Shown here: positions 10,006 through 62,246 of the stretch, piece after piece
How positions within the stretch are numbered: position 1 is the first letter of the stretch
Layout of the letters: each line of letters opens with the position of its first letter
The notes under the pieces: generated by a model
Told to the model about the DNA's origin: nothing
What the model saw: only the letters and a program-made list of their open reading frames with translations
Database searches by the model: none
DNA from: Vitrella brassicaformis CCMP3155
Lineage: Eukaryota > Protista > Chromerida
Direction: 5' to 3'
Assembly (NCBI GenBank): GCA_001179505.1
Contig: CDMY01000294.1
Coordinates: 67,350-131,349 of the forward strand
DNA: 64,000 nt
Translations under genes and position numbers: made by a program

Positions 10006-10028
10006 CTAGGGTGTCACCTGAAACCGCT
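10006..10028 (+). promoter_or_regulatory. Conserved 23-bp promoter motif, copy 1 (CTAGGGTGTCACCTGAAACCGCT)
   Basis: Lies between the divergent starts at 9941 and 10163; matches copies at 28576, 47672 and 62224. Confidence 0.7.
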
Positions 10029-10162
10029 ACTGCCAGCGAGGAGCTGCGGTTGGCGACCGTCTTGTCTTGTTTGGAGTTTTTGACGCTTTCCACGTGACTA
10101 GAGGCAACCTGTGCTCTTGCCCTTTCGTTGACTAGCCGTCTGGTGCCTCCGCTCGCTTCAGC

Positions 10163-13100
10163 ATGGCGTACTACGACCGCCGCGGCGACTCGTACGGCCG
10201 CTCAGACCGTTCCTACGACTACCGCGGTCCTCCAGGCGGCTACGACAGCCGGGGAGGGTCCTATGGGGGGTCCGGTTCGCGAGGGTTCGGTGGCGGGAGC
10301 TACGGCGCCAAGGAGAGCTTTGGCGGGAACCTCCAGGCCGTCAACTGGGGCAGCATTGAGGTCGTCCCTTTCGAGAAGAACTTCTACATGGAGCACCCCG
10401 CTGTGCAGGCCATGACTGACGAGGAGGCCGACGCCGTCCGCCGCAACAACCAGATCACCATCATGGCGGGCCGCAGCGTCCCCAAGCCGGTGCGCAACTT
10501 CGAGGAGGCCTCCTTCCCCGACTACATCCTCGACGCCGTCACCCAGGCGGGCTTCAAGTCCCCCACACCCATCCAGATGCAGGGCTGGCCCGTCGCCCTC
10601 TCCGGCCGAGACATGATCGGCATCGCCGAGACCGGCAGCGGCAAGACGCTCGCCTTCCTCTTCCCGGCCGTCGTGCACATCAACGCACAGGCGCACTTGA
10701 GGCCCGGCGACGGGCCGATCGTCCTGGTGCTGGCTCCGACGCGCGAGTTGGCGGTGCAGATCAAGCAGGAGTGCGACCGGTTCGGGCGGTCGTCGCACAT
10801 CAAGAACACCTGTGTGTACGGCGGGGCCCCCAAGGGTCCGCAGGCGAGGGATCTGAGGGAGGGGGTCGAGATTTGCATCGCCACGCCCGGCCGCATGATA
10901 GACTTCCTCGAGGTGAGTGAGAGAGGGAAACAAACAGAGTGGGTGGTGCGTGCGGCGGCAACATCATCTTCGTGTGCCTCGTGTGCCTCGTGTGTGTGTG
11001 TGTGTGTGTGATAGAGCGGCACGACCAACCTGCGCCGCGTGACGTATCTAGCCCTAGACGAAGCTGATCGGTACACACACATGAGACGACAGCTGCCTGC
11101 CTGCCTGCCTGTTGTGTGAGGGTGTGTGTATGACCTTCTCTGTGTGTGGTGTGTGTGTCGATGTCAGTATGTTGGATATGGGTTTCGAGCCTCAGATTCG
11201 CAAGATCGTGTCGCAGATCCGCCCCGACAGGCAGACACTCATGTGGTCCGCCACGTGGCCGAAGGAGGTAGGTACATACCACAACACAGCCACAGTAGTG
11301 GAGAGGAGCCATGTAGAGGTGCCGACCATCCCATCGCTGTGTGTGTGTGGCATGTGTGTGTCAGGTTCAGGCGTTGGCCCGCGACCTCTGCAAGGAGGAG
11401 CCGGTGCACATCAACATCGGTACGGATGGGGTCATTCATGATGAGATGAGGGATCTCTTCTCATTGGACCGTCTGTGGCTGTGTGTGTGTTCAGGTTCGT
11501 TGGAGTTGCGAGCGTGCCACAACATCAACCAGTATGTCGAGATCCTGCAGGTGACTTACTTGCTTAATGAACCACACTTTACCACGTACAGACAGACCCA
11601 CACCCATGCACTGCACAGACATTACTTACGTCAAGTCACTCACAGCCAGGGAGAGACAGCGAGGGGGCGAGAGAGGCAGAGAGAGGGATAGCTGTGTTCT
11701 AGCTAGACACACGCATCCATCCATCCAGCAGCAGCATCAGACAGCCAGCCACCAGCACACTAAGTGGACATAGCTAACATACACCCACCTAGTCAGTCCC
11801 CGCCCCATTTTTGCCGTCCGTCCGTCAGCCCCTCCCCTCCCCTCCCCTCCCCTCCCCTCCCCCCCTGCCTGGTGCCTTTTCCTTCGCTGTGCCTGCCCCT
11901 TGCTCTCTCTCTGTGTCTGTGTGGTGTGGTGTGTCTGGCTGCTGGTTGTTCGTTTCCTGCAGGGAGGTTCATTCACAGGCTACGGAGCGAGGCCACCACC
12001 AAGGGCGGGGCGGTTGGAGGACGAAACCAAGAGGCACTTCAAGCCGCTCGTCAATTGATGACGGGCGGAGCACTGCCTGCACTGCCTGCACTGCACGATC
12101 CGCAATGCGATCGTGTATGTGTGTGTGCTCGTGCGGCGCTGCTGCCGCCACACAGACGATGCACCTGACTGACCTGGTCGATTTGGTCAGTCAGAGTGTC
12201 TGTTGGTCGGCATGTCGGTCGGTTGATGTGCCTGCCTTGTTCCTTCCGCCCGCCGGTGATTCTCGCTCCCGCAGCCGAGTAGCCTGTGAGGACCTCTCTG
12301 TGGACGGACCGATGGACAGAGTGAAGTGACTGAGTGCAGTGTGTGATAATAGTGAGTGGCGGATGGCTGGGAGGGTGGGTGCGTGATTGGATTAGCTGAG
12401 GTAGTCCTCTCTCTTTTGTGTCGGTAGCTGTAGCTAGCTAGTCGTAGGTAGAGAGAAAGGGCTCGCAGGCACTGCAAGCAAAGCAATGAGAGAGGACGTT
12501 TGTGTGTCTAAGTCGAGTCGCCTTTAAGTGCCGTTTGTCGTTCGTTGATTGGTCCGTTGGTTCGTTCGTCTGTCCATCCATCCATCGGTCGCTGCACGGC
12601 TGTCTTACCGGTCCCTGCCTCTGCCTGTGCCTCTCTGCGTCTATGTGTGTAGGAGAGCCAGAAGTGGAGCCGCACTCAGGAGTTGCTAACGACACGTATG
12701 AACAACGGCCGCATCCTCATCTTCACCGACACCAAGAAAGGTCACAGGGAGAGGGAGAGGGAGAGGGAGGGAGGGAGGAAGGGAGAGAGAGAGAGAAGGA
12801 AGCCTGTGTTGTTTGTGTACATCTATCTCATCTGTGTGTCTGGTGTGGGGTCCGGTGCGGGTGTGTGTGTCCTGGGGTACTGCCTGCCTGCAGGTGCGGA
12901 CAACCTGACCAAGAACCTGCGGCTGAACGGCTTCCCGGCCCTCTGCATCCACGGCGACAAACGGCAGGAGGAACGAGACTATGTAAGCCAAGCAGCCCTC
13001 CCCCCACCACACCACACACACCACACACACCACACGCCCTCCGCCCATCACACACATCGATTCACACGCATACGTCACATGTGTGTATGGCTGTGTGTGT

Positions 13101-62087: not shown

Positions 62088-62223
62088 CTCTCTCTGTCCG
62101 TACGGGATCTGTTGCGTCCGAAGGCCGGCGGCCTATGGAGATCAGGAATCACAGCGGACCCACGGATCTCGCTTCCCCAAGCAAGAACCTCCTCTTGCGG
62201 AGATCTGGAGTTCGAGCGGCAGC

Positions 62224-62246
62224 CTAGGGTGCTGCCTGAAACCGCT
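62224..62246 (+). promoter_or_regulatory. Conserved 23-bp promoter motif, copy 4 (CTAGGGTGCTGCCTGAAACCGCT)
   Basis: Lies between the START gene start (62087) and the Erv start (62285). Confidence 0.7.

Follow-up and report, generated by a model that had tools for sequence, protein, structure and literature searches.

Introduction

To our knowledge, transcription initiation has hardly been described in the chromerids, the photosynthetic sister group of the apicomplexans, and we know of no clear core elements in apicomplexan promoters. Here, we analysed a 64-kb stretch of DNA (hereafter the window; positions 67350-131349 of scaffold CDMY01000294.1) from Vitrella brassicaformis CCMP3155, a free-living alga that is a relative of the malaria parasites. 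The window contains four copies of a 23-bp motif, CTAGGGTG-N3-CCTGAAACYGCT, all of them close to the start of a gene. An earlier reading of the sequence (the original prediction) had interpreted this motif as an upstream site for a multi-domain or dimeric transcription factor. Based on its position relative to the 5' ends of transcripts, we lean towards the view that the motif is a start-site-proximal, orientation-specific core promoter element of Vitrella nuclear genes that acts at the DNA level.

The intergenic distances of Vitrella are very short (median 92 bp) and gene pairs in head-to-head arrangement are in excess, and no motif was reported in that work (PMC4501334). The nearest documented functional analogue of the motif described here appears to be the INR+FPR core promoter block of oomycetes, which is 16-19 nt long, TATA-less and orientation-specific, and overlaps or abuts the start site (Roy et al. 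2013, PMC3599244). It is present in ~13% of the genes of Phytophthora infestans, was found by its over-representation near gene starts, and either half can also stand by itself (INR 18%, FPR 7%); the elements have been tested by mutagenesis (PMC3599244). Like INR+FPR, the Vitrella motif is long, TATA-less and lineage-specific and serves a subset of genes, and it may likewise overlap or abut the start site. The two differ in that they have no sequence similarity and belong to different supergroups, and in that the oomycete block is degenerate, whereas the Vitrella motif is letter-perfect and neither half is found in the window without the other. Furthermore, unlike the mutagenesis-tested oomycete block, the Vitrella motif is known here from sequence and transcript contigs. 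In Toxoplasma, which belongs to the closest lineage with well-mapped promoters, the motif gCATGCa is found in 44% of the promoters and is positioned relative to the start sites (PMC7854901). Unlike the Vitrella motif, gCATGCa is short (6-8 bp) and palindromic, and it lies upstream, in the nucleosome-depleted region; none of the 26 copies of GCATGC in our window is promoter-proximal.

Three other groups of elements need to be considered. First, the Motif 1/M1BP site of Drosophila, the ZNF143 site (SBS) of vertebrates and the M3/M5 sites of Trichomonas are 12-20-bp sites of high information content near gene starts. They are read by multi-zinc-finger or Myb-like proteins, lie tens of nucleotides from the start, and serve broadly expressed genes, often in bidirectional promoters. 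The Vitrella motif differs from them in that it has no sequence match to any of these sites, whose factor families are specific to metazoans or parabasalids. Second, the plant telobox (AAACCCTA) and the sites of yeast Tbf1/Rap1 are promoter sites that resemble telomere repeats, and teloboxes occur in the promoters and 5' untranslated regions (UTRs) of housekeeping genes. The string ACCCTA is common to CACCCTAG, the reverse complement of the first half of the Vitrella motif, and to the telomere repeat of the TTTAGGG type, and six of the eight positions of the plant-type telobox core match in this half. Unlike a telobox, however, the motif has a second half, CCTGAAACYGCT, without a telomeric counterpart, from which the first half is never separated. 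Degenerate AACCCTA runs are also present in the window, at 23921-23948 and 57663-57690, away from gene starts.

Third, in the dinoflagellates and perkinsids, which are sister lineages, a leader of 22-23 nt is trans-spliced, in the sense orientation, onto many unrelated mRNAs, and relict genomic copies of it exist. The Vitrella motif is similar to such a leader in that a constant 23 nt lies in the sense orientation near the 5' ends of unrelated mRNAs. It differs from the dinoflagellate leader in several aspects: the Vitrella sequence is encoded beside each gene, where genome and mRNA are collinear, there is no sequence similarity between the two, the host genes keep their introns, and the Vitrella transcript contigs from MMETSP lack the 23 nt. 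The original prediction had stated that no such motif is known from this lineage, and searches of the open-access literature with the sequence strings and with chromerid promoter and leader topics likewise gave no description of it.

Results

The motif is an all-or-none element

When both strands of the window were scanned with the motif written as one search pattern, CTAGGGTGNNNCCTGAAACYGCT, four exact matches with 0 mismatches were obtained, at precisely the positions at which the original prediction had placed them (Table 1). Dinucleotide-preserving shuffles gave a chance expectation of 0.01 matches per window on average. The prediction that all but one of the non-spacer positions are invariant was reproduced, as 19 of the 20 specified positions are identical in all four copies and position 20 is C or T. 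Raising the tolerance to three or fewer mismatches gave no extra site in the 64-kb window. When every site on either strand was scored by its number of matching positions, the four copies reached 20/20 and the best background site 14/20, and nothing scored between 15 and 19.

The motif is made up of blocks of 8 and 12 nt, which are separated by 3 nt in every copy. No site in the window has the half-sites at another spacing between 0 and 8 nt, and the 8-mers CTAGGGTG and CCTGAAAC do not occur in the window outside the four full copies. Two blocks at a fixed spacing with variable spacer letters, as found here, are a property of bipartite sites; half-sites occurring separately, which would be another, were not found in the window. 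The spacer had been described as free. Its letters do vary (TCA, CTC, CTC and CTG in copies 1-4) at a constant length of 3 nt, but it is not fully free in that three of the four begin with CT. We conclude that the 23-bp motif is a real, all-or-none element.

Alignment of 100 nt on each side of the four copies showed that the similarity ends ~2 nt beyond the motif, in line with the earlier description of the flanks as unrelated. These flanks bear on the possibility that the motif is what is left of a dispersed repeat or mobile element whose copies happen to have inserted near gene starts, which we consider highly improbable. Perfect identity between the copies could reflect a recent spread, and a 90-nt segment upstream of copy 3 (47712-47799, minus strand) recurs in inverted orientation at 42356-42445 (plus strand) with 93% identity, which shows that some DNA next to promoters is duplicated here. 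However, this duplicate diverges 12-18 nt before the point that corresponds to the motif, and no motif follows it before the gap 42478-42777 is reached. The duplicate may stem from the duplication of a promoter segment or from the redundancy of the assembly around 40.8-43.9 kb. Moreover, the 23 bp plus ~2 nt that the copies share are too short for a self-mobile unit, and the copies have neither terminal inverted repeats nor target-site duplications. A repeat search of the window found no family that covers the four motif sites. A transposon remnant had been named in the original prediction as an outcome that would speak against it; extended flanks, a repeat family and scatter away from gene starts are all absent.

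The motif lies at gene starts and points at a gene on its own strand

We constructed a gene map of the window from NCBI gene calls, open reading frames (ORFs), a self-trained codon-usage scan and Pfam. It contains 17 start codons, among which those of the transporter, PUF60-like, unnamed and Erv1 genes were inferred, being outside the NCBI calls used. All four motif copies are located less than 150 nt upstream of a start codon, a zone that makes up 3.3% of the window (P = 1.2e-6), which bears out the predicted placement just upstream of start codons. Copies 1, 2 and 4 sit in head-to-head promoters with ATG-to-ATG distances of 221, 226 and 197 nt, respectively. The three bidirectional promoters of housekeeping genes that had been proposed were thus recovered, and the head-to-head genes are broadly housekeeping in nature (DDX5/Dbp2, RanBP2-type zinc-finger, PUF60-like RRM, TPT-family transporter and Erv1/Alr). 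Copy 3 has no annotated divergent partner; on its upstream side, a Macro-domain gene ends.

In all four cases, a nearby gene on the same strand as the motif lies on its 3' side. The distance from the last base of the motif to the ATG of this sense gene is 134, ~144, 33 and 38 nt for copies 1-4, respectively, and the ATG on the opposite strand lies at 64 nt from copy 1, 59 nt from copy 2 and 136 nt from copy 4. The original prediction had given two geometries, with 33 and 38 nt in the forward sense (copies 3 and 4) and 64 and 59 nt in the reverse sense (copies 1 and 2). Although these four distances are correct, the two geometries were seen because copies 1 and 2 had been measured to the nearer gene on the opposite strand, and they reduce to a single rule, namely that every copy points at a same-strand gene. 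This orientation rule is suggestive and statistically not strong; it carries little weight because only copy 3 lies outside a head-to-head pair.

The window contains six head-to-head pairs, with ATG-to-ATG distances of 221 (9941/10163), 225 (19558/19784), 226 (28431/28658), 229 (49161/49391), 224 (52304/52529) and 197 nt (62087/62285). In a seventh pair, situated directly to the left of the window, the ATGs are 329 nt apart and the motif is absent. The near-equal spacing within the window suggests a standard-sized shared promoter unit in a compact genome, to which the choice of gene models could contribute. Three of the six pairs have the motif and three do not, and since other head-to-head promoters lack it, the motif is one promoter class among several. 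Counting sense genes, it serves four of the 17 starts, or seven of the 17 when the divergent partners are included.

A second short sequence was noticed in these promoters. The palindrome AGATCT occurs 20 times in the window (9.5 expected), and six of these 20 copies (19740, 28644, 49194, 49310, 52443 and 62201) lie within 150 nt upstream of starts (P = 3.5e-5). It is present in all three head-to-head promoters without the 23-bp motif, and a further copy at 15271 lies 38-43 nt upstream of the U3 gene. AGATCT may be a second promoter word.

Table 1. Motif copies, adjacent genes, transcript features and RNA gene of the window
Feature	Position in window	Strand	Basis or remark
Motif copy 1, CTAGGGTG-TCA-CCTGAAACCGCT	10006-10028	+	Pattern scan; points at DDX5/Dbp2
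Motif copy 2, CTAGGGTG-CTC-CCTGAAACTGCT	28576-28598	-	Pattern scan; points at TPT-family transporter
Motif copy 3, CTAGGGTG-CTC-CCTGAAACCGCT	47672-47694	-	Pattern scan; points at CEM00040.1 gene
Motif copy 4, CTAGGGTG-CTG-CCTGAAACCGCT	62224-62246	+	Pattern scan; points at Erv1/Alr gene
DDX5/Dbp2 DEAD-box helicase gene, CEM00032.1, 552 aa, sense gene of copy 1	10163-13999	+	ATG 10163
RanBP2-type zinc-finger gene, 631 aa, divergent partner at copy 1	7222-9941	-	ATG 9941; NCBI annotation
TPT-family transporter gene, sense gene of copy 2	First ATG 28431	-	Start inferred from ORFs
PUF60-like RRM gene, divergent partner at copy 2	ATG 28658	+	Start inferred from ORFs
CEM00040.1 gene, 529-aa transmembrane/coiled-coil protein, sense gene of copy 3	45847-47638	-	ATG 47638
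Erv1/Alr sulfhydryl oxidase gene, sense gene of copy 4	ATG 62285	+	Inferred start
Unnamed divergent gene at copy 4	First exon starting 62087	-	Inferred ATG
DDX5 5' UTR as assembled in two MMETSP samples	10036-10162	+	Contigs L002, L008, L003
CEM00040.1 mRNA 5' leader	47639-47694	-	L005 start 47694; L006 start 47664
Unbroken L009 block including copy 1 and the whole head-to-head spacer	9625-10912		RNA contig alignment
U3 small nucleolar RNA gene	15314-15509	+	Rfam ACEA_U3, 84 bits

Assembled transcript 5' ends of two sense genes lie at or just after the motif

The sense genes of copies 1 and 3 are covered by transcript contigs from MMETSP (two samples) and from the Logan assembly of run ERR558152. 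The DDX5 contigs from MMETSP start at 10036 (L002 and L008) and 10037 (L003), which is 8-9 nt past the motif end at 10028. For the CEM00040.1 gene, the MMETSP contig L006 starts at 47664, the 8th nucleotide past the motif, and the spliced Logan contig L005 starts at 47694, the first base of the motif. The MMETSP ends have the same offset in both genes (+31/+32 from motif base 1), and all sense-gene 5' ends fall between motif base 1 and 9 nt past the motif end. Because all of these assembled ends fall at the motif or close to it, the latter appears to be tied to transcription initiation, and it does not behave like a distal regulatory site. Two placements follow: the motif lies either at about -31 to -9, as an upstream core element, or at +1 to +23, as initially transcribed sequence. 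The fact that four MMETSP contigs from two genes and two samples share their offset argues for a sharp RNA end downstream of the motif.

Other explanations of these ends were considered and rejected. A trans-splice acceptor at the MMETSP ends was discarded on the basis of the preceding letters, which are CAG at the DDX5 end and contain no AG at the CEM00040.1 end. A k-mer break by the assembler was discarded as the cause of the MMETSP ends since the copy 1 spacer is unique and long k-mers are not shared. A trans-spliced leader is ruled out by the collinearity of L005 with the locus, which holds at 100% identity from its first base through exon 1. Finally, a relict spliced leader derived from retroposed cDNA is ruled out by the introns that both genes keep, which according to the transcript-to-genome blocks number at least 11 in DDX5 and two in CEM00040.1.

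If transcription starts at motif base 1, the 23 nt would constitute a common 5' leader, encoded in cis and read as RNA. A cap-proximal RNA-binding factor or a complementary RNA would then control translation, stability or localisation, and the motif, encoded in each gene, would be the functional equivalent of a spliced leader or a TOP motif. We regard this as unlikely, even though several observations speak for it: the L005 start at motif base 1 is also the point at which conservation starts, all four copies are in the sense orientation at a short distance from the ATG, none of the four putative leaders contains an upstream ATG, 20 letter-perfect positions without degenerate copies suit base-pairing, and the length of 23 nt resembles that of a spliced leader. 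However, the four MMETSP contigs mentioned above start past the motif and do not contain it, and the base-1 start comes from one contig, of a kind that de Bruijn assemblers can break at shared sequence. Nor is a stable structure predicted, as the leader folds no better than shuffled sequences (z -0.5 to +1.0); in an Rfam scan of the window, the motif leaders match no family. That many Vitrella mRNAs begin with a gene-encoded CUAGGGUG-N3-CCUGAAACYGCU which is read as RNA next to the cap seems to us more doubtful still.

The 5' ends also bear on the kind of reading given in the original prediction, that of an ordinary upstream site where a general regulatory factor binds in shared promoters; the orientation of the motif and its exact distance to the start would then be incidental. 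The factor could be an activator of the Myb type, whose sites the halves may resemble, or of the AP2 or zinc-finger type, or it could be a nucleosome-excluding or insulating factor like Reb1, Abf1, Rap1 or Tbf1 of yeast or ZNF143 of vertebrates. Three of the four copies lie in head-to-head promoters, where they could serve both genes, and the arrangement of two invariant blocks exactly 3 bp apart is reminiscent of a bipartite factor site. One half has a core, ACCCTA, that is similar to telomere repeats, and the window also contains degenerate repeats of AACCCTA. The RNA coverage that crosses the motif at copy 1 also fits such a site. Nevertheless, an equal 5'-end offset in two genes and a base-1 end in one of them would not be expected if the distance to the start were incidental. 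In addition, the distances to the flanking ATGs are inconstant (64/134, 59/144 and 136/38), such that the motif has no fixed position within the shared spacer, and the telobox match is partial. On balance, we give this reading a low probability. What stands of the original prediction is that the motif is real, confined to gene starts and not part of a longer repeat; as for its role, the 5' ends suggest a start-site or core promoter element, or a leader, rather than a generic upstream factor site.

Occurrence outside the window

No exact match to the motif was found in 596 Gb of prokaryote genomes or in IMG/VR. The JGI metagenomes gave one exact match, on an animal-like contig with a POU-domain ORF (L001), which is taken to be due to chance. 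The 4.1 kb of scaffold that extend beyond the window contain no new copy. Conservation in apicomplexans had been suggested as a check, and at the one locus compared, that of the PUF60 orthologue of Eimeria stiedai, the motif is absent (best match 15/20). The stretch upstream of this orthologue (L011, 9100-9200) contains a degenerate telomere-like run, GGGTTTAGGGTCTAGGG...TTAGGGTG, as well as many CAG repeats, a usual feature of Eimeria genomes. The U3 small nucleolar RNA gene, the only one to pass the gathering thresholds in the Rfam scan of the window, has no motif copy within three mismatches upstream of it, and the motif therefore does not behave as a proximal sequence element of the small nuclear RNA type.

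Gene identities, assembly gaps and other features of the window

A word search with exon 1 of DDX5 returned a 100%-identical MMETSP protein, and one with the large exon beside copy 3 returned CEM00040.1 of V. brassicaformis CCMP3155. Using an exon of the zinc-finger gene, a search of representatives gave P0138, which led to contig L009, together with one coral protein and one bacterial protein. The label 'START domain' for the gene left of copy 4 was rejected as there is no Pfam hit, and neither a guessed Macro-domain protein nor any of seven read-through ORFs had an exact match when looked up.

All motif copies and the adjacent gene starts are at least 1.9 kb away from any of the six runs of N in the window. 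The flanks of the gaps at 20553, 41675, 42478 and 55985 are repeated 1.1-2.6 kb away with 97-100% identity (19716-20552 equals 20853-21689; 40875-41274 equals 42778-43177; 41275-41674 resembles 43178-43573; 55585-55984 resembles 58126-58521; and 56285-56684 resembles 58862-59261), whereas the gaps at 24758 and 45470 have unique flanks. The redundant flanks likely reflect scaffolding redundancy, in which the same locus was assembled twice, and because of them continuity across these four gaps should not be assumed. The annotated proteins of 103 and 190 aa (CEM00038.1 and its neighbour) fall into one 90% cluster. None of our claims reads across a gap, and the unread letters could hide further motif copies. 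It should be noted that the CEM00040.1 mRNA contig terminates in a long run of G, precisely where it meets the gap 45470-45769 (position 45770). A homopolymer tract in the 3' UTR of this gene probably caused the gap; the 3' tail of L005 was rejected as gap-filling sequence, as it is poly-G.

Elsewhere in the window, about four tandem units of ~577 nt with 82-100% identity are present at 3583-5700 (minus strand) in a gene for a protein of 1033 aa (1867-5635); they form a recently amplified repeat of coding and intron sequence.

Discussion

The possible functioning of the motif as a core promoter element can be pictured as follows. A sequence-specific protein or complex that reads ~20 bp would bind the motif in the short nucleosome-free spacer between genes. 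This putative reader would have several DNA-binding domains or would consist of two factors held at the fixed 3-bp spacing. Once bound, it would cause RNA polymerase II to initiate at the motif or immediately past it, in the direction in which the motif points. Of this scheme, we infer the action at the DNA level, the binding of a multi-domain factor and the positioning of the start site alike.

A number of points weigh against this view. The two kinds of transcript assembly, MMETSP and Logan, differ by 30 nt on where the mRNA starts, and the contig ends are assembly ends, not cap-mapped start sites. The Logan contig L009, which corresponds to window positions 11551-7024 and joins spliced DDX5 exons to spliced zinc-finger exons, shows RNA coverage over copy 1, so that transcripts of one or both strands cross the motif; either the divergent 5' ends overlap by at least ~30 nt, or transcription reads through the promoter. 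The orientation is informative at copy 3 only, as head-to-head spacers offer a gene either way. Near-perfect copies without degenerate forms are unusual for ordinary factor sites, and the absence of degenerate copies would also fit recognition by base-pairing or a role at the RNA level. Finally, the four copies all come from one 64-kb window with its 4.1-kb extension.

In summary, the reading of the original prediction is partly supported and can be sharpened, in that the motif appears to be a hitherto undescribed, gene-oriented element that coincides with transcription start in Vitrella. If there are few copies genome-wide, the motif would be a local curiosity. If the 23 nt are read as an RNA leader, they would correspond, encoded in cis, to the leader that dinoflagellates and perkinsids add to their mRNAs by trans-splicing, and would possibly tell how the leader system arose or was lost towards the apicomplexans. 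As a core promoter element, the motif could be used to purify its binding factor, would mark start sites for annotation in a very compact genome, and would serve as a natural building block when expression constructs are designed for this organism, which lacks genetic tools. The motif would also allow comparisons that bear on how apicomplexan promoter architecture originated and on the dinoflagellate spliced leader.

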